Below, one piece after another: positions 31,216 through 43,489 of a DNA stretch of 64,000 nucleotides. Every line of letters starts with the position of its first letter. The first letter of the stretch is position 1. The stretch is from Macrostomum hystrix (lineage: Eukaryota > Animalia > Platyhelminthes): contig CATNEN010000004.1 of NCBI GenBank assembly GCA_950097015.1, positions 274,918-338,917 of the forward strand, given 5' to 3'. Made by a program: the position numbers and the translations under genes. The notes under the pieces were generated by a model. The model was not told the origin of the DNA. It saw only the letters and a list, made by a program, of their open reading frames with translations, and did no database searches.

Positions 31216-33031
31216 GCTCAAGTGTGTCTTTGAGAGTGTGGTCGTGTAGAAAGCATACGTATCAGAAAGTTGGCTTCTGTGGGCATTCTCTTGTATGGTC
31301 TGTACATGTTGTATGGATGTGATTGGGATATCTATGGTTGAAATTGAATTCAAGATGCCGAAATCGAATGAGAGTCCTACACGCTACAACCCCCTCTTAC
31401 CATAGACAGTACAATAGCTTTTGCTACGGTATGAAATTGAATGCCAGTTGCCGAAATTGTAATGTTGCTTGTTGAATCTGAATGTGCGTTTGCTGAATTT
31501 GAATGTTTATTTGTCAAGCTAAATATAAACTGACGAATTTGATTGTCAGCTTGCCGAATTTGAATGCGAGTTTTGTTGAAATTTAACGGAAAAAAGGTGT
31601 ACATGAGTTAGCAGAATGGGCGATCCTCGCCTCCCTGCTGTGTCCAAGGAACTCTGTAGGAACAAAGTCAAGTCAGTTGTGATGACATAATTTTTGTGCA
31701 TAATAAACTCTTGTATTTCGATCGGAAACGAAACGAACGGTGTTAGTACGAGCGTATTGTGGCGTAGGCAGAATATTTTTTGCTTTTTAAAAACTGTAAT
31801 ATAGTTTCGGAAATTCAGACAAATTACTTAGCTATTCGATCCGAGGATTTGCCTTGTCAAACTAAACTAAGCTTCAAAGCACATTATCAATTTCAAACAA
31901 AAATCCAACTTCTAGCTTAGTGAGTCTACGATTAAAGACAGATGAAATGGTTATACAAATAATTAGAAGCAGCGTCAAGGAAATCATATTAACTGATCGA
32001 CATTTAAAATAAGATTAGTTCAAATACCAAGTTTTTCTTTTCTCTGAAAATAAAAAAAACATATTCAAACAATCGCCTTGAAAATCCAGAACATGGGCTA
32101 AAATTTTCCGCTCTATCCGATGAAACAACTTCCAGAATTCCTAAACGTCAGCATCTTCGAGATATTCAACGATTCTCGTCGGACTGTCTGGTGGCTTCAA
32201 CCACCAATTTAGGCATATTTTTTCTGCTCACAAATTTTCATCATGTAATTACATGTCGGCTATTAATTGTTAATTTTTAATTTTTAATTTTTCGAACGCA
32301 TATGGATTTGCCATAGAGGTTACTTCAGAGCAATGTTAGTTATTCTTGTCACCAGGGTTTTCGACAAAAATTGCTGAATAAATCGATGAATGGCGGAAAA
32401 TGTTAATCTTTCACATTTGCAGTGCAGGTATTTGAAATACCCCGTGGTCCATTCACTGGGGGGGAGAATAGCCTGGACTTTCTACTGGGAAAAAATGTAT
32501 GAATATGTAGAGATAAAGACGGAATAAACTTGCAAAAAAACAAAAAATTAAGCACCTTATTAAAGGTTAAAACGGTTAGAAAAAATGTTAAAGAATGGTC
32601 CATATTGAGTAGTCGCTCTGGATTATAAAAAATGGTATCTGTTGGCCCATTCACACTGCCATCAAGCGAGGTCAGAATACACGTTGTACATTGTTTCTAT
32701 GACGCTTCAAAAAAATTTCTATACCAATTGCGAATCATTTGATGGCGGTGTGAACAAGCTTTTACGTTCGTAGAGCGCCGGATGATTTTGAACCTTGGTC
32801 ACTTTGTCACAATGAGGACATTATTGAAAATCGTTTCGATTTTTTCTAGATCTTTATCATAAAAACAGGGATTTGTTTTGTGAGCAAATGTCTATGCAGA
32901 TAGGCGTTTGTACTTAGTCTCAAATCTTTTAAAGGTAGGAAAGCATAGTTGGAGTACACAAGAAGCAAATTAGCAGGAACAAGCCTCCGAAATTTTGTAG
33001 TTTAATCCTTTAAAGCGTTAGAATGAAGCAT

Positions 33032-36000
33032 CTATTCGATAGAGGACCCGTCTGCAGTCACAGATGCATCGCTGTTGGGTTCAATATTTTCTTTTGCGCT
33101 TGTTGACTCGCCATCCGTACTCGTCTCAAGATCATCACTTGATGTCTCATCATCATTTGATTGAGATGACTCGTCAAATATTCGTGCTTGAGGCATGTAC
33201 TGCGCATTAGTAATTGAATGATAAACATTACCAAGAGTTTCTTTGATTTCATCGATTTCTCTTTTAGTATTTTCGCAAGTGCTTGCGACATCTGCCAGTG
33301 CCTTGCTTACATGATTAATCCATTCGTTATTAGTTGTCAGAAACTGTCCAGCTAGTCTGGCATGACCAGCCAGAATTTCTTGGGTCTGGACTTGAAGAAG
33401 TGCCTTAATTGATTCTGTCTGTCTCACGTCGTCCGGATTCTGCAGTATGCTGCTTTCGCGCACCCAGGACTCTCTGACCTGCTCAGGCTGGACTGCGGTC
33501 GGATCACTCCCTGTTCTCCACTTGGGCCGCTCGCCATGGTCACCGTTGGAGGCCACAGTCGACGCCTCTGCCTGCTCCTCCGCTGAGTCCAAGAGGCTGA
33601 GTATGGGCGGACGCCACAGTTGATGGCGATGACGCCGCATGGTCTTCGCATGCAGCCTGGCAAACTCTTCTGGTAGTTCTGCTGGCTTGCTTTCGCTTGT
33701 GTTCCTCTGGCTGAGCTGTGTGAGGAGAAGGAAGAGAAAATTCTTGGACAATACGAGCTTAGTTGTGCAAAACGTCAAGAATTAAAAAACCACTGTTCTG
33801 ACACGACCGCCTTACCTGATAGTGTTTGTATCGCTGAGAATAAACCAAAATGGCATTGAAGGCTCCAAAAATGGTAAACGGTGGCGCAAACCACGTCTTG
33901 TTGGCGAACTCCTGCAGCAGTTGGTACCTGCTGCGCCTCCAAATGGCCAGCGGCCTGGTTGCCATGCGAGTCACCGTCACGTTGAAAAGCGCGATGAGAA
34001 GATTCAGCATTACCACCCCGATTACGAGGAAGAAGATGAATAAAACAACATTCAGGAAGAAGTTCTGCCCACCGGAATTGGCGCAGTCGGTGGCGCTAGC
34101 GGTATGAGAACTGCAGGTCTCATACTCAACCTTCTCAAAAAAACCGGCGGTCAGATGCAATGGAATCGTGAAGATCCTACCGAAATTTCTTACCTCAACG
34201 TACTGCGAGTCGTCACTACGTATGGAAGTGCCCGGAAAAACTATGTTGAATACGAACACGCCAAACATTACATACATTACTAGCATTATAGCAAGGAACG
34301 GCAGAAGGTTGTGCCAGATGAGATCATGAAACATTGAAATCAGCGGGCCTATACTTCTAAAGTATCGTAGAAGACAAAAGGCCCTGAAGCACCACAAAAC
34401 AAAGGAAACTGTCAGTGTTATCTGGCATCCGTAGACGATCTCCTCTTTTTCGCCTATTTCACTGCCTTCCGCAATGATGCGCTTCCAGATCAGCCCAACT
34501 AACATGGCTACAATGGCGAGAATATCGAAGACGTTAAAAACATCACGCAGGTAGTTTATTTTCAGCATCACCATATCAAACACCTCTTGGAGCAAGAGAG
34601 AGATCAAATACCACCAGAAAATGTACTCTGGAACATGCCAATGAAAGTTGCGCCTGATGTCGATTATCCAAGCGGCAAAGGACGTCAGGAAAAAAATGTA
34701 TGCCAACGAATGCACCACAATCTTAGCTTTTACATTCAGTGAAGTGAAGCATCTGTACCTCCGACCAGCTGCCGGGTTATCCGCTCCTGTGCTGGGCTCT
34801 GACTGGTGGCACTCGCAGTTAAACCGCTTTAGTTCCTCATCAACAAAGTCAACCAGTAAGCAGGTCGCGTAGACTTCCTCGCAGTCATACAGCTCAATCA
34901 TTTGCTTGATAGTGGCCTCCGATCTCTCCCACTGAGTTCGCTCCTTGGAACTGCAGCCTCCGATACATCTGAATCTTCCACTGTAGTTTAAACTCGGCTT
35001 GAAATAGCAGAATTTTCTCTCACTAGCCATAAAATCAAATATTATATTTCGCTCCTCGTCTCTTGCATCGGCGTACACGTGCTCAAAAGCGTTAATCAGC
35101 ACACATTTCACCCTGTACTCCAGTGACCTTAGATGCGTGTCTTTTGCCTCGTAGCTGGTCTTCAAAGCTTGGATTTCGATTAGCACTCTAAGGCAAACTG
35201 GGATTAAGTCACTCTGGCGGGTGACTACAAAGTCAAAAAGTACCTGGACTCTGCGTAGATGTAGGACAATTTCAATGAAGTCAGGTTTTTGCTTTCCCCT
35301 GAATGCCTCTTCAAGACTCCCTATATTTGAGAGACCGTCGGCTTGAAGAAGGAGAGCAAATACTTCAGCCTCAACTGTAGGCGTTACTTTGAACCCTAGA
35401 GTCATGAGAGCGCGGAAGTGGTCGATCGAGTCCAGCCTGATGGCCTCCAGCAGCAGTGACACCTCTGGCCGCGTCCATTGATTATAGTCAAGATTGGCGA
35501 GATGGAAGTCTGCATTTTCGCGCTTTTCTAACTGCTGCCTGGGGCTAGAAAAAGAGTCAAGCATTTGAGCAGCCTCTTGCTGAGTTGGCAACTGAACTCC
35601 TCGCCTGCCGGGATCAACGACGCTTTCAAACACATCGGGCTGGAAACTCTCCATAATTCTATCCAATGTCCTCTGGTGCCCAGCCCTACAGGCGAAGTCG
35701 TATGAGTTAAGCCCGTCATTTGTTTCATCTGCCATGGAAAACTTCTCCTCCAGCAAATAGCGTATATTCTGCTCATGGCCTCCCTCACAAGTAAAGTGCA
35801 TAACGGTGCCACCTTGCTTCGGTCCGAAATCAACGGGTGAAAGGAGAAGATCGTACCATGAGCGATCGGAAACTGAGCACATCAACTCTTTAATTTCAAT
35901 GTACGGATACCGACTGAAAAAATAGTTAATTGCATGAACTCTAGATGTGTTATAGAGCAACTTTTGCACCATGCTTTTCTCTCCGAAATGAAGGAAAATG

Positions 36001-39000
36001 TCTATAACCTGCCGCAGATTTATCATCGGCAACTCAGCAGCCTGGAAAAAGTTCTGATCGGCGCTATTTTCAGTGCAAGGATCAACGCCAGTCTTTATGA
36101 GCTGGAGCACCTCTCTAACAATCTCCTTCGCTGTGCAGTACAGCTGTTCGCTATCATTCTTGTCCCACAAAAACAGAGCATGCAGCAGTGTATTTCCAAT
36201 CCGATCGCGTAGAATCCGCCTCTGCTCATCGCTCACCTCCTGCATGAGTCGAACATTCTTGCTGCCGAAAGCGAAGAAGGTCGAGTTTCTGAACTGGAGG
36301 TCTCGCTTTGCTGCTAGATATTTGAAGTTGTTGTCCTGAATCTCTTGCCTGATCACATCTGTCACATCGAAGCCGTATTTAGAGTTCCTGGCACTGAAAT
36401 GAAGGCTTGAACGATGCTGATGATCAGTCTGTGAGAGGCCAGACAGCAGGCGTTCGTTATTGGAGTCCATTTTTAGTAGCTTCAGGAGCGACTGTATGCA
36501 ACGACTGTTTTGATGCTGCAGAGCGAAGTGCAGTGGGGTTAATCCCGTCCAAGTCTCCACTCAGGAGGCTTTGTATCATACTTTTTAAAACATTATTTTC
36601 TGAACCATTCCTTTGCAGCCTCTTAAACAACCACTTAAGGTTGCGGCCGCCTGTGACTTTGTTCATTGCAACGTAGTGCAGGACTGAGCGTTTTCGTTTG
36701 CAGGTCTCAAGCAACGCGTCGAAGTTGGGATTCTCGCCAAGCAGAGTCGCAAGCATGCTGGAGTCTCGCCTGTTCATGGCTCCGTAATGCAAGACAGTGC
36801 GACCCAGCGAGTCCTTGTCTGTGCCGCTGAAATTTAAGCCTCCGCTGCTCTCCATTTTTTGCTTGCCTGATGCCGCCTGGTACTTTGCTGCCACGAGGCT
36901 TATTGACTTTCCCGTATTAGAAGCGCGCATGTCTATCGGAGGACCTTCCTCATTGCGCACCTGTGTTAGGATCTCTACAAAAAACTCACGCTTGGCACAA
37001 CGTTGCATGGCGGACTTTCCTGATTTAGTCTCCTTTAAGAAAAACTTTTTTTTCAGTGTTCTGACGGCTTGCTCGACAACACTCTGCTTCTGAAATGCTG
37101 AGACTTGACTGGCCAGTTGAATGCGGTCTTCTTCGCTCAGGAAGTCCTCTCTGTTATTCTTCAGGAGCTGCAACATGGCACTGGAAGCCTGACCGTTGCC
37201 CGCTAGTTCTAAAGTGAATTCACTTAAAGCGGACCTCTTCGAACCATCGGGTATTTTCTGATACATTAACTCAAAAAATTCATGTACGCCTGAATTCCTA
37301 GCGGCCATTTTGAGCACTGAACTGTTAACATCCATGTTCCGCCTTTCGATCAAATCTGGCATGATTCCCACTGCTCTGCTGTTGGCAGCAACGTAGTGCA
37401 TAGGTGTCATGCCCTCTTGGTCAGCTCCGTTCCAATTCAGTTCACTGTGGCACAAATGCGACAAAGCCACAGAGTTCTGATGCATGGCGGCGATGTGCAA
37501 AGCAGTTCTGCCTTTTTTGTCCCTCTGCAAGAGAATTTCGCTAGGCTGCTCCCCTTGAGGCCAAAGCTTCTTCAGGGACTTCTTAATGAATTGATGGTCC
37601 TGGTGCTGGAAGGCGTAGTGCAGCGGTGTGCAACCAAGTTCGTCCTGTTTACCGAATGCCTCTGTGTGCTCTCGAAGAAGAGTTTCAACAGTTGATTGGC
37701 GAAGCCGATTGCTGCAGAAGAGGTGAACCGGAGTCATGCCTCTGACATCCTTGACGCAGAGATTTTCCTTCAGCATTCGCATAAATTCGTCGGGCATATT
37801 CTGCCGGCAGTACATGTTCTTTGCTAATTCATGTACGGGTGTGGATTCGAAACAATTCTTTTTTCCAAGAATCGAAACCCAATCGCTTTCTTTTCCATTC
37901 TGAGCAGCAGAAGTCTAAGGTTGTCTTTAAAGTCTCCTTCCTGTGGTTTCTTGCCATCAGATGAATCGCAGTAGTACCCTGAGAGTCTCCTGCAAATAAA
38001 AGCTCTGAAGATTTTGGGTCATTTGTATTAAGATGCCTGACAAAATGTTCTGCTGCCAAAAAACCAGTTCTATTGGCGCACAGATGGTGCATAACCGTGC
38101 GGCCAAAATTGTCGGCTTCGGCTGTCAGCTCAGCCATTTTTCCGTTATCGATGTAGTGTCTCACGAATTCAAGCGTGTGCGGTCCGCACGCAGCAAAGTG
38201 CAGCGGTGTTTTTCCCTCCCTGTCCTTCATCAGCGTTTTAATTCCACTAGCGCTCAAGGCTTTCAACGCTTTCTCCAATGTTTGCCATTTCATAGCGAAG
38301 TGCAGTGGAGTTATGCCATCTGCGTCCATTTCACTGAGAATTCGACTCCCACAGCATTCGATCAGGGAGGTAAGAGTGTCCCCAAACTTGTTCTTGGCTG
38401 CCAAATGAGCTGGCGTTCGTCCTTTGACGTCTTTCCTCTCGAGTAGACTCTTGTCTTGAAAGGATCTCAGGAACGACAAGTGACTTTGATGCTTGGCGGC
38501 CAGATGAATGGGAGTTCTATTTTTAGCATCACGAGCAGACCAGACCTCAGGTGTCACCTTGCTCATGCCCATCTCAGGGATCCATGTGTGCTGGAACTGC
38601 GCCGCATAGTGAAATGGTGTTCTGCTCTGAAAATCTTTTGCTGAAAAAGCTTTGGCACAATCTTGGCTATGATGAACAATAAGCCACCAGAAAAGGCTTT
38701 TCGTTTCTATATCACGGCTCGCATTTGCGCTATTGTCAGTTGCCTTATTGGGCAGTGGAAGTGCGGAAGAGGTGAAACTTCGGTTGATCGCTGCGTAATG
38801 TAAAGGCGTTCGGCCATCTGCATCAGGCTGACGGAATTCAGAGAAAAAAAGTTTCTTCTGTGCTGTCTCTGCTGTCTGTTGTCGAATAAATTTAACAATT
38901 TTCTCTGGATGTGAGCTCATAGCAAGGTAGTGTGCGAGAGAGCGGCCTTTAAGATCTTTTATGTTCAGGTGGGTAGATATCAGCCTCATATAGCCTTTGC

Positions 39001-40552
39001 ATGTCTGTCTCTCAGCCATGAGATGAAGCGGCATCACTCCGTGATGGTCTACGTCCAGAAATCTCTCTTCCGGTAGCTTTTCCTTCAGACGCGGTAGTAG
39101 TTTTGTGCAGGCTGGATTGCCTGCTGCATAGTGAACGACAGTTTTGCCATGAGAGTCTGCAATGCTAAAGTGATTAACATCAAGAACATCTATCAACTGT
39201 TTCATAGATCTAAACTGTTCCTCATAGTTTGGAAGCTTGTTTTGCCAGGTGAGTACTGCCAGGTGCAGCGGCGTTAGCTTGTCATTGTCCTCCTGTAACA
39301 TTTTGGACACGAGTTCCGCATTGTTGTTGATCCAACTTAGCATTTCCCAGCGGCTGTTCGGGTTCAAAGCGCAGCAATGAGCCGCAGTCCTGCCGCTCTG
39401 GTCCCTTCTGTTCCACCACTCGTCCACAAGCAGGCGATCGTATTGGTACAGCCACTCCAGCGTTTTGAGACAGCCGAATCGGCAGGCACAGTGCAGCGGT
39501 GTCTCAGCCCGCTTGTTGCTCCTCCATGCTTCTATTTGTTGCCTTAGAAAGTTTCGCAGTGGTTGATTTTCTAAATCTAGCCCGCTAGAGTTGCTGACTG
39601 CAAAGTGAAGCGGTGACCAATAATTATGGTCAATCTGATTAAGGGCTTTATCGTATTGTCTGTCGATTTGCGTCTTCCCAAACATCTTTACGACAGTCTG
39701 GGTGTCGCAGAACTGTAGGATTAACATAAAAGGCGTTTGCCCATGAGAGTCTTGCAACAATGGTTGCAGTGGTTTTTCCAGCAGTTCTTGCACCAGACGG
39801 CTGGGATCGCAGACTCGGCTGTCGGTCGCGTGGTGCAGCCCAGTTCTTCCGTGCCTGTCTTCCGTACCTAGCAGATCGATTGAATGAGTATGCTCAAGGA
39901 GGTATTTAATGATCCAGCTGTCTTGCCGCCTTTTGCTGGGGACAGATTGACCAGCTCTCGCTGACGTCGCCTGAGCCTTACCTGCACTGCTGAGACAGCA
40001 AGAGACGCCACAGCTGAGAGACCCTCTCACTGCGTAGTGAACCGGAGCCATGCCGTGCGCATCCTCTGTTTTCCAGCTTGAAATCTCTTTTCCTTCCAAA
40101 CGTTTCAGCAGTGGCTTTAGGGTGTGCGAATGCTTCAGTGTCACCGCAATGTGCAGCGGGGATCTGCCGCTGGCATCCAACTGAGCAAAATGGCTCACGT
40201 GGGCCAATCTGGAGTGGTTTGTTATCCGATCGATGGCCAACATACCGCCCGTCGTATCATCATTTTTTAGTCCCGAAATCCAGTGAATTAGAGTTCGACC
40301 GATGGAATCAATGGGAAATTTTGTAGTCGGTTCACTAAGGTATTCAAATAGTGTATTCATTTCGGGTCTTTTTATTTGAAAATATTCAACGTCATGCTTC
40401 TCGATTGCTGTGCGCACTTCTTCTGAAAATTCAAAAAGCTGCTTTGCCATATCCAAGTTGGGTGGCTTCTTGCCTCGAGAAGACTTCCTGCTGGCACCAC
40501 CAGCTGTGCCGCCTGCTCTGGTGCCCGCAGCCACGCCACCGCGGCCAGGCAT
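33032..40552 (-). CDS. Giant ankyrin-repeat TRP cation channel (about 2,470 aa if frameshifts are repaired; start uncertain, could extend to 40761/40885)
   Basis: Four ORFs join into one protein: +1 shift near 37900, +1 shift in a G run at 36544-36546, and a phase-0 intron CAG|GTAAGG...CACAG|CTC at 33716-33815. Roughly 30-35 G.TP/LH ankyrin motifs, six TM segments (about 33950-34725), NLLIALFN, a TRP box WRRSRYQLLQEF..APPF and a C-terminal coiled coil. Confidence 0.85.
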
Positions 40553-41022
40553 GACTCTAGACGACAGGGAAACAAAGCAGGAACGGGATTGTTCATGTAG
40601 CTCTAAATCTGGGAGAGACAATTCCGCGGAAACCCCCCATTTTTGTGGACCAAATTTGGCTGACTGGGGTGAAAAAAAATTTAATTGCAGGAGGGCTGCG
40701 GGCAGTGGCACATCATTTATTGACACTTGACCCGCAGCCAGCAAGGAGGCAATTCTGCCCATTTCGCTGAATCCTGAGCACACACGCCCACAGATACTGT
40801 ACACAGGCACACACACTTTTTCATCGTCAGGCAGTGTACTCCTTACTGTGCCTTGGAGGTTGGCCCTCAAGGGCGTAAATTGCACGAAAAGCCCTCAAGC
40901 CTTCTCTTCGCGGCTGCGCCCCAAATAAATGTGGCCTCGTCGTGGAATCGAACTTCGGGAGGGTCGCTTTCACAAACCCTAATTTTCACAACGTTTAAAC
41001 CAGATCCTTTCATAAGCCCTAA

Positions 41023-43489
41023 TCCACTATACTAAAAATGAAATGCTTGCTTGCTTGTAATTGATTTTCTCCCGAACAGCTCAACCAATTTTCACCATTT
41101 CTTCACCAAAAGATGCCAAATATGGGGACAATTTTACACGTATTTTTATTAAGCTTAACTTTATTGCTAAGAGGATTAAATATTCGAAAAACATGATTTT
41201 TTCAAAGGTCAAACCATCTTGGCCTATTGAGAATTTTACTCACTGCCACTGAATTGAAATTGCATCGTCAAATTGCGCAACAACCCCAAGCTGATTGAAT
41301 TTGAAGCCTGCACTCTGGAGACAAATTGGAAATAAATGTACACAACCAACCGCGAGACTGAGTGTACTCTATTTTCTTACTTCATTGTACAAAGCCAGAA
41401 CTTTGAAAATTTATTTTATAAGGCTGATTTTTGCACCCACTAACCAACAGTCGGAATAGCCGATGTGTAGGCACTAGGAATAGGTTATAGGCTAGGCTAG
41501 GGTTCGATTCTGCACTGCGTCAAATCATTTAAACTAATTTTCAGCCAGTAGTGATTGAAGATTATTTTGATTTATTTTTTTCATTTCGTAAATAAAATAT
41601 CATAAATCATAGCAAATCTGAGTTTGAATCATTGCAACAATAGAGTCTAAATCATGGCAAAACCAGAGTCTGAATCATGGCTAAACCAGAGCTTGAATCA
41701 TGGCTAAACTGGAGTCTGAATCATGGATAAACCAGAGTCTGAATCATTGCTAAACCAGAGTTTGAATCATGGCTAAACCAGAGTTTGAATCATTCTAAAC
41801 CAGCGTTTGAATCATGGCTAAACCAGAGTTTGAATCATGGCTAAACCAGATTTTGAATCATGGCTAAACTAGAGTCTGAATCATGGCTAAACCAACGTTT
41901 GAATCCTGGCTAACCTAGAGTCTGAATCATGGCTAAACCAGAGTTTGAATCATGGCAAAACCAGAGTTTGAATCATGGCTAAACCAGAGTTTGAATCATG
42001 GCTAAACCAAAATTTCAATCCTGGCCAACCAGAGTTTGAATCATGGCTAAACCAAAATTTCAATCCTGGCCAACCAGCGTCTGAATCATGGCTAAACCAG
42101 AGTTTGAATCATGGCTACACCAGAGTTTGAATCACGGCTAAACCAGAGTTTGAATCATTGCTAAACCAGAGTTTGAATCATGGCTAAACCAGAGTTTGAA
42201 TCATGGTAAAACGAGAGTTTGAATCATGGCAAAACCAGAGTTTGAATCATAGTCAACCAGAGTCTGAATCATAGCCCACCAGGGTTTAAAACATGGCGAA
42301 ACCTGAGTTTGAATCTTGGCTAACCCAGCGTTTGAAAAATCAACGTCAACTGGGGAGTCATCATCAAAATGGGGATCATGGTAAACTGGGGGATAATTGT
42401 CAACTTAGGGGGTAATGGTCAACTGGGGGATCATCATTAACTGGGGGATCATCATCAACTGGGGGATATTTGTGAACTGGGGGATCATTGTCAACTGGGC
42501 CGGATCATTGTCAACTGGGGGATTATTGTCAACTGGGGGATCGTTGTCAACTGGGGGATCATTGTCAACTGGGGGATCATCATTAACTGGGGGATCATCA
42601 TTAACTGGGGGATCATCATCAACTGGGGGATATTTGTGAACTGGGGGATCATTGTCAACTGGGCCGGATCATTGTCAACTGTGGGATCATTGTCAACTGG
42701 GGGATTATTGTCAACTGGGGGATCGTTGTCAACTGGGGGATCATTGTCAACTGGGGGATCATCATTAACTGGGGGATCATTGTCAACTGGGAGTTCATTG
42801 TCAACTGGGGGATCATTGTCAACTGGGGGAACATGGTCAACTGGAGGGGACATTGTTAACTGGGGATCATCATCAATGGGGAGTCATCATCAACTGGGGG
42901 ATCATTGTAAACTGGGGGATCTTTGTCAACTGGGGGATCATTGTCAACTGGGGGATCATTGTCAACTGGGGGATCATTGTCAACTGGGGGGTTCATTGTC
43001 AACTGTGGGATCATTGTCAACTGGGGGATCATTGTCAACTGGGCGGTCATCATCAACTGGGGGGATCATTGTCAACTGGGGGTTCATTGTCAACTGTGGG
43101 GTCATTGTCAACGGGCGGGATCATTGTCAACTGGGGGATCATTGTCAACTGGGGGATCATTGTCAACTGGGGGATCATTTTCAACTGGGGGATCATTGTG
43201 AACTGGGGGATATTTGTCAACTGGGGATCATTGTCAACTGTGGGATCATTGTCAACTGGGGGATCATTGTCAACTGGGGGATCATTGTCAACTGGGGGAT
43301 CATTGTCAACCGGGGGTTCATTGTCAACTGGGGGATCATCATCAACTGGGGGATCATCATCAACTGGGGGATCATTGTCAACTGGTGGTTCATTGTAGCT
43401 TTAAAAAGCTGTAAATTCAGCTGCTAAAAAGTATATACTAGACGAATTAAAAGTATTTCTGCTCCCCGAAGGGGGGCAAAACTTGCTAG
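41023..43489 (+). mobile_element. Long non-autonomous Helitron, copy 1 (complete TC...CTAG)
   Basis: A|TCCACTATACT start; 23-bp then 18-bp arrays; hairpin+CTAG at 43461-43489; the next copy starts at 43490. Confidence 0.88.

Follow-up and report, generated by a model that had tools for sequence, protein, structure and literature searches.

An ankyrin-repeat, TRPM-like channel gene of Macrostomum hystrix and its probable place in a Macrostomum-expanded branch of flatworm 'TRPM-like' channels

Introduction

To which channel family does a flatworm gene belong that carries a very long array of ankyrin repeats ahead of a pore resembling that of TRPM channels? The gene in question lies in a 64,000-nucleotide (nt) stretch of the Macrostomum hystrix genome (GCA_950097015.1, contig CATNEN010000004.1, positions 274,918 to 338,917; hereafter the window, within which all coordinates are given), where four minus-strand open frames are read as one gene at 40885-33032 (-). 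TRPM and TRPS channels are described as lacking ankyrin repeats, these having been lost before the TRPM/TRPS split (Himmel et al. 2020, PMC7306681), and a first-pass annotation of the window had accordingly treated the gene as a chimera. This premise does not hold for flatworms: Sm.TRPM_MCLZ of Schistosoma mansoni is described as a three-exon gene with several ankyrin-like repeats at the N-terminus (PMC10788528) and as lacking MHR1/2-SLOG (PMC11731825), and the name 'TRPM-like', proposed for its group in 2026 (PMC12861061), is defined by ankyrin repeats instead of SLOG before a TRPM-like channel (PMC11731825, PMC12861061).

We place the window gene, with a probability of about 0.8, in a Macrostomum-expanded family within the flatworm ankyrin-bearing 'TRPM-like' channels that include TRPM_MCLZ. 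The combination of ankyrin repeats and a TRPM-like pore is therefore a layout already published (2023-2026), of which the window copy is a new, long-armed and very diverged member.

Results

Affinity of the Channel Domain

The channel is encoded in the third of the four pieces of the gene, in which Pfam Ion_trans covers amino acids (aa) 634-866; searches, alignments, trees and fold prediction were all run on the four pieces separately rather than on a joined protein. In a single-sequence search against solved structures, the stretch from S1 to the TRP helix (aa 612-906) matches TRPM3/TRPM2 in one piece at ~46 bits. With a membrane-only profile of the family (the 11-member alignment A3), the best 60 distinct Protein Data Bank (PDB) sequences are all TRPM (115-75 bits), and profile-profile alignment (hhalign) of the family with SLOG-bearing TRPMs gives a probability of 100 and an E value of 6e-40 over aa 475-908, which comprise pre-S1, S1-S6 and the TRP helix. 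TRPM is thus the family closest to the channel part by single-sequence, profile and profile-profile comparison, with TRPC a near-tie by fold. The motifs from which the first-pass annotation had recognized a TRPM-like membrane part and TRP box (YLRDVFNVFDILAI, IGPLISMF, VFPG, LNLLIALFN and WRRSRYQLLQEF..WFAPPF) all lie in the 933-aa frame at 36560-33762 (-), and its assignment is borne out by these comparisons. In the hhalign alignment, E659, D662, N676, D679 and E884 (the last in the TRP helix) correspond to the E/Q/N/D/E cation-site positions of TRPM, which bind Ca2+ in TRPM2/4/5/8. Within the 23-member family alignment (A1), E659 and N676 never vary, and conservation of D679 is at least 90%; E884 is invariant in the 11-member alignment.

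A HMMER scan of 1.84 billion representatives returned 383 matches at E<0.001, 20 of them at E<1e-30. The top matches are uncharacterised proteins of Macrostomum lignano with ankyrin repeats and Ion_trans; next come ankyrin-bearing fluke and tapeworm proteins, often auto-named 'TRPM7' and ~1,380 aa long in Schistosoma, followed by SLOG-bearing TRPMs. The fluke and tapeworm proteins are identified as published TRPM_MCLZ orthologues because name, length and species agree (PMC10788528, PMC12861061). The public model of one M. lignano relative (A0A1I8IKQ9, 1,988 aa) also has STIM1-type EF-hand and SOAR domains, and is probably a fused model of two neighbouring genes. Another group-A (see below) ankyrin-TRP protein, MEE4247282.1, is filed as 'MAG: Kangiellaceae bacterium'; its 5,106-bp contig is almost certainly eukaryotic (flatworm-like) and was wrongly binned with bacterial sequence.

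A diverged TRPN (NompC-type) or TRPA channel, whose resemblance to TRPM would be no more than the general similarity of group-1 TRP pores, would also account for a long ankyrin array: the ~30 repeats come near the 29 of NompC, and NompC is the top PDB sequence match for the ankyrin pieces as well as the top Foldseek match for the 915-aa model described below. TRPA channels have 14-18 ankyrin repeats. However, the overall NompC score derives from the ankyrin stretches, and its membrane stretch scores 12 bits in the single-sequence search against 46 for TRPM3; neither NompC nor TRPA1 is among the first 60 PDB matches of the membrane profile, all of which are TRPM. TRPA1 chains match the ankyrin pieces only in the PDB sequence search, and TRPA1 is absent from the first 60 PDB matches of the channel piece. 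For 27 clusters among the best 150 matches of the HMMER scan the source names were compared: all belong to Macrostomum relatives, to TRPM_MCLZ orthologues or to SLOG TRPMs, and not one to TRPN or TRPA. The first 50 entries of a second fold alignment are likewise all TRPM or TRPC. Although TRPN and TRPA references stood outside the trees, we consider a TRPN or TRPA origin highly improbable, and the view of the first-pass annotation that the channel stands apart from both is in keeping with all the ranking tests run.

Predicted Fold

The AlphaFold2 model of the 915-aa exon part, a prediction that the first-pass annotation had called for, has a mean pLDDT (predicted local distance difference test) of 75.9 and a TRPM/TRPC-type core. 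Residues 331-915 of the model align with the TRPM2 chanzyme at Z 21.6 (452-483 residues aligned), with TRPM4 at Z 20.3 (19% identity) and with TRPC4 at Z 19.7 (13% identity). Residues 331-600 superpose on TRPM2 from ~residue 418 (the MHR3/4 region), and nearly as well on the TRPC linker domain. The modelled fold would therefore be the linker-plus-channel core that is common to TRPM and TRPC, and the preference for TRPM over TRPC comes from sequence comparison.

Phylogenetic Placement

In a tree of 66 membrane domains, built with no outgroup, four groups were distinguished:

Group A, the Macrostomum family with the window gene inside it; support 100/100
Group B, TRPM_MCLZ orthologues (Schistosoma, Fasciola, Echinococcus, Opisthorchis); support 91/73
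Group C, M. lignano proteins with ankyrin repeats and a weak TRPM2-like domain; support 96/77
Group D, SLOG TRPMs; support 100/99

Here B, C and D form a three-way split, with A across a long branch. A second tree was rooted with eight TRPC proteins from a public collection; the TRPC genes of the M. hystrix genome, which have many exons and open frames of 128-515 aa, were left unjoined and out of the outgroup. In the rooted tree, A + B + C are one clade (99/93), which is sister to D (94/91) and not nested in the sampled SLOG TRPMs. Since the window gene falls in group A (100/100) and outside group B, it is not an orthologue of TRPM_MCLZ. The phylogeny proposed by the first-pass annotation thus sets group A with TRPM_MCLZ, next to the SLOG TRPMs. 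Its suggestion of a lineage-specific chimera outside the named subfamilies stands in one respect, in that group A is found almost only in Macrostomum, and fails in the other, as the group joins the published TRPM_MCLZ clade.

Several points weigh against this placement. The fold leaves TRPM and TRPC unseparated, and language-model look-alikes in the Atlas are nearly tied (TRPM 0.95, TRPC 0.94). The cytosolic TRPM domains SLOG (PF18139), TRPM2-like (PF25508) and TRPM_tetra (PF16519) have no Pfam match in the four pieces at E 0.01, nor in the 23 family members (the window gene and 22 relatives) even at E 0.1. The best relative anywhere in the HMMER scan is 31-34% identical, and a word-based protein search with the linker-plus-channel part returned nothing at E 0.001, which we attribute to a family too diverged for shared 5-mers. 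Group A sits on a long branch, with an end branch of 1.4-1.5 for the window gene, and TRPC is the only outgroup, TRPS, TRPN, TRPA and TRPV references having been compared by ranking tests outside the trees. The tail exon has no Pfam family and no detectable pairwise similarity to the tails of the M. lignano relatives. Finally, the gene model was read from the DNA alone, and its last exon is a candidate assigned by splice motifs and an open frame.

Gene Structure

The four open frames are as follows:

40885-37832 (-), open frame 1, 1018 aa
37815-36460 (-), open frame 2, 452 aa
36560-33762 (-), open frame 3, 933 aa
33778-33035 (-), open frame 4, 248 aa

Read as one gene, they resolve into these features:

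37859..40885 (-), piece 1: N-terminal ~190 aa without repeats, then 19 ankyrin units
37859..37864 (-), frameshift 1: A6 run, +1
36544..37864 (-), piece 2: 8 ankyrin units in ~438 codons; no repeat recognised over a stretch of 163 aa
36544..36546 (-), frameshift 2: GGG, +1
35571..36546 (-), beginning of piece 3: final helical repeats of ankyrin type, modelled as helix pairs (pLDDT 75-93); aa 1-330 of the 915-aa exon part
34761..35570 (-), helical linker domain and pre-S1: aa 331-600, by predicted-fold superposition; sequence homology from aa 475
33963..34733 (-), six-helix channel domain S1-S6 with pore loop: aa 610-866
33903..33956 (-), TRP helix: TRP box WRRSRYQLLQEF at 33941-33906
33815..33716 (-), predicted intron: 100 nt, phase 0, CAG|GTAAGG donor, pyrimidine tract, CACAG| acceptor, from sequence motifs only
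33715..33032 (-), last exon: 227 aa and TAG; heptad-periodic stretch at 33418-33221, then an acidic Ser-rich tail
33001..33006 (-), possible polyadenylation signal: ATTAAA, 26 nt past the stop codon, from the motif only

Candidate start codons are the ATGs at 40762, 40552 (the end given by the first-pass annotation) and 40450, while the open frame extends to 40885; the upper limit of the gene is uncertain. If read through, the predicted product has ~2,440-2,540 residues depending on the ATG chosen, with the pieces counted separately. Two of the three frame changes are +1 shifts, as expected by the first-pass annotation, at A6 (37864-37859) and GGG (36546-36544), and the third is a canonical GT-AG intron (GTAAG..CACAG). 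Nudix is absent from the gene in the Pfam scan. The coiled-coil C-terminus proposed earlier may correspond to a 66-aa heptad-periodic stretch in the tail exon, a periodicity that 1 of 500 shuffles reaches on a crude score; Pfam TRPM_tetra has no match in this exon.

Just upstream of the gene, at 42400-43430, is a coding-looking simple repeat that is open on both strands (GIIVNW / GSLSTG / DHCQLG type units). Across the window (1-64000), G+C varies from 33% to 66% in 2-kb steps (66% at 28-30 kb, 33% at 18-20 kb).

The Ankyrin Array

The domain search suggested by the first-pass annotation detects Pfam ankyrin families in the first three pieces, at E 4e-53 (Ank_2, 3.7e-53), 1e-22 (Ank_2, 1.1e-22) and 1.5e-10, with Ion_trans in the third. 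With a hidden Markov model (HMM) built from the repeats of the gene itself, 29 ankyrin units are detected at a domain E<0.05 (19, 8 and 2 per piece), and a Pfam Ank_2 match at aa 238-303 of piece 3 raises the total to ~30-31. Of the ~30-35 irregular repeats previously estimated ahead of the channel, the irregularity and the junction with the channel are therefore upheld, with the count at the lower end. Units mostly follow one another at 31-45 aa, and there are gaps of 64-163 aa in which degenerate units may be concealed. There is no tandem DNA repeat in window positions 33000-41000, so the array is evidently old and diverged. Similarity of the ankyrin region to that of the nearest relative is at the level of the repeat only (23%, in several registers), too little to set the two arrays in one-to-one correspondence.

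The alternative that the locus holds two or more genes, with one or several ankyrin-repeat proteins encoded upstream of a separate, shorter channel gene, draws on the two frame breaks between the ankyrin pieces and on the fact that the joining of the pieces is predicted from DNA. Yet the pieces overlap or abut within 15-100 nt, and there is no gap, stop-start arrangement or promoter-sized spacer between them; the repeat register is continuous across the pieces, and the channel-bearing piece begins inside an ankyrin repeat. Furthermore, paralogues and M. lignano relatives have ankyrin repeats and channel in one open frame or protein. Separate genes therefore appear extremely unlikely, and the four frames are treated below as a single ankyrin-channel gene.

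Frameshifts and the State of the Window Copy

Ankyrin periodicity carries on across both frameshifts. With one A fewer at A6, reading continues through ..DSWKKNCFESTPVHELAKN.. into the next ankyrin unit; with one G fewer at GGG, it yields DLDGLTPLHFAL, a textbook start of an ankyrin repeat, and this second shift is confined to ~20 nt. Tiny introns at the two frame changes were considered and rejected, as both frames are open together for only ~83 and ~20 nt, with the register of the repeats kept throughout.

Our preference, held with limited confidence, is that the frameshifts are real and that the window copy is a recently disabled copy or a null allele. In the same assembly, open frames of 9.3 and 9.6 kb run without a break through paralogues, so the indel rate of the assembly must be far below 2 per 7.5 kb; were it as high as 2 per 7.5 kb, the chance of both long frames being clean would be well under 1%. 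The window copy is also the most diverged member of the family, keeping 67% of family-conserved positions versus 79-100% in other members. No matching predicted protein was found in the public collections searched, and the empty word-based search implies that the records contain no identical protein of 503-1,601 aa, whether predicted or derived from a transcript.

A competing reading, somewhat less favoured although far from implausible, is that of an intact, functional gene in which the extra A (37864-37859) and G (36546-36544) are consensus errors of the assembly; this concerns the state of the copy and not its family placement. Each change inserts one base in a homopolymer, the ~2,450 codons of the expected frames are free of stops, all 12 family-invariant residues of the C-terminal module are kept, and the ankyrin consensus is back immediately past each shift, a pattern that fits assembly error and counts against a disabled copy. 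On the other hand, the runs are short (6 and 3 bases), and the long clean paralogue frames, the divergence of the copy and the empty protein searches apply here with the opposite sign. Two neutral indels with no nonsense change would fit a very recent inactivation, and a genuinely frameshifted copy is the state that we narrowly favour.

Paralogues in the Macrostomum hystrix Genome

The search for paralogues that had been recommended was productive: the M. hystrix genome has ~20 paralogues of the channel part at 37-40% identity. Across the loci compared (L013-L022 and 12 further loci), the C-terminal ~800 aa form a module common to the paralogues, which is 29-40% identical. Many are in tandem clusters on two other contigs (C1, 37-160 kb; C5, 5.96-6.07 Mb) with open frames of up to 3,199 aa, whereas the window copy is a singleton on its contig (C4).

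Near-identical group-A genes within the C1 and C5 clusters have open frames ranging from 1,242 to 3,199 aa, a spread suggesting that the number of repeats changes rapidly. One paralogue (L021 1-6639; C1:129200-135838) is a single 3,105-aa open frame, of which the N-terminal 2,200 aa are 30.3 tandem copies of a 219-nt (73-aa) unit with 92% matches; Pfam detects almost no ankyrin in this repeat region, only spurious low-complexity families.

Discussion

Proposed Mechanism and Significance

The domain layout, the nearest solved family and the clade membership described above allow a working mechanism to be put forward. Each subunit would comprise, in order, a short N-terminus, ~30 ankyrin repeats, a helical linker, a TRPM-type six-helix channel, a TRP helix and a heptad-periodic C-terminal helix, and four subunits would form a non-selective cation channel, the tetramer and the ion selectivity both being presumed. 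The intracellular ankyrin arms and the linker could relay a signal to the gate via the TRP helix, with the nature of the stimulus, mechanical or chemical in the suggestion of the first-pass annotation, conjectural. A cation site in the S1-S4 bundle, probably for Ca2+, may modulate opening, because the site residues are the best-conserved positions of the family; dependence on Ca2+ is likewise presumed.

A more far-reaching proposal is that group A is a subfamily-level branch of its own, in which ankyrin arms of NompC length (much longer and homogenised in the paralogues) arose convergently on a TRPM-type pore and serve as tethers, gating springs or variable binding surfaces of an undescribed class of sensory channel, the window copy being the oldest, non-homogenised lineage. 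We regard this as speculative and rather unlikely.

The textbook rule that TRPM and TRPS lack ankyrin repeats fails in flatworms, and the window gene extends a 'TRPM-like' group so far known from one parasite drug target by a lineage that is free-living, branches deep and has very long arms. This bears on whether the ankyrin head is ancestral or was substituted for the SLOG domain. The window copy alone is of modest value, as it is probably broken; Macrostomum, however, is a transgenic model, and its relatives of the gene, some twenty in number, could help to show what channels of the TRPM_MCLZ type sense.

Comparison With Known Systems

The nearest described counterparts are TRPM_MCLZ (Schistosoma mansoni Smp_333650) and its fluke and tapeworm orthologues, which, like the window gene, have N-terminal ankyrin repeats instead of SLOG/MHR1-2, a TRPM-type S1-S6 and TRP helix, few exons, and helical C-terminal parts, and which fall into one clade with it in the TRPC-rooted tree. 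The window gene differs in belonging to a separate, almost exclusively Macrostomum group behind a long branch (membrane-part identity 24-26%), in its size (~30 repeats and ~2,450 residues, versus ~1,380 residues in the schistosome orthologues) and in being frameshifted.

Canonical TRPM channels (TRPM2, TRPM3, TRPM4 and others) match best, by sequence and by profile, from pre-S1 through S1-S6 to the TRP helix. The window gene keeps their TRP box pattern (W-x-x-x-R-Y-x-L-x-x-E-F/Y) and cation-site residues, and its modelled linker-plus-channel fold would resemble theirs at Z 20-21.6. In contrast to canonical TRPM, it has no detectable SLOG, TRPM2-like or TRPM_tetra domain and a long ankyrin array instead, and its pore loop carries the motif AGF-FE where theirs has FGQ or YGE. 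TRPS (soromelastatin) channels have SLOG and Nudix domains and no ankyrin repeats (PMC7306681), the reverse of the arrangement in the window gene. Within the genome itself, paralogues of the C1 cluster combine homogenised arrays (30 copies of the 219-nt unit, 92% matches) with intact frames of up to 3,199 aa, whereas the window copy has neither.

TRPN/NompC (PDB 5vkq) is comparable in that a very long ankyrin array (29 repeats, versus ~30 here) precedes a group-1 TRP channel. The window gene is unlike NompC in its membrane domain, which is only weakly similar (12 bits), in its irregular repeats (gaps of 64-163 aa), and in its heptad-periodic tail, a feature seen in TRPM and TRPC. By analogy with NompC, a spring- or tether-like role of the ankyrin arm is conceivable.

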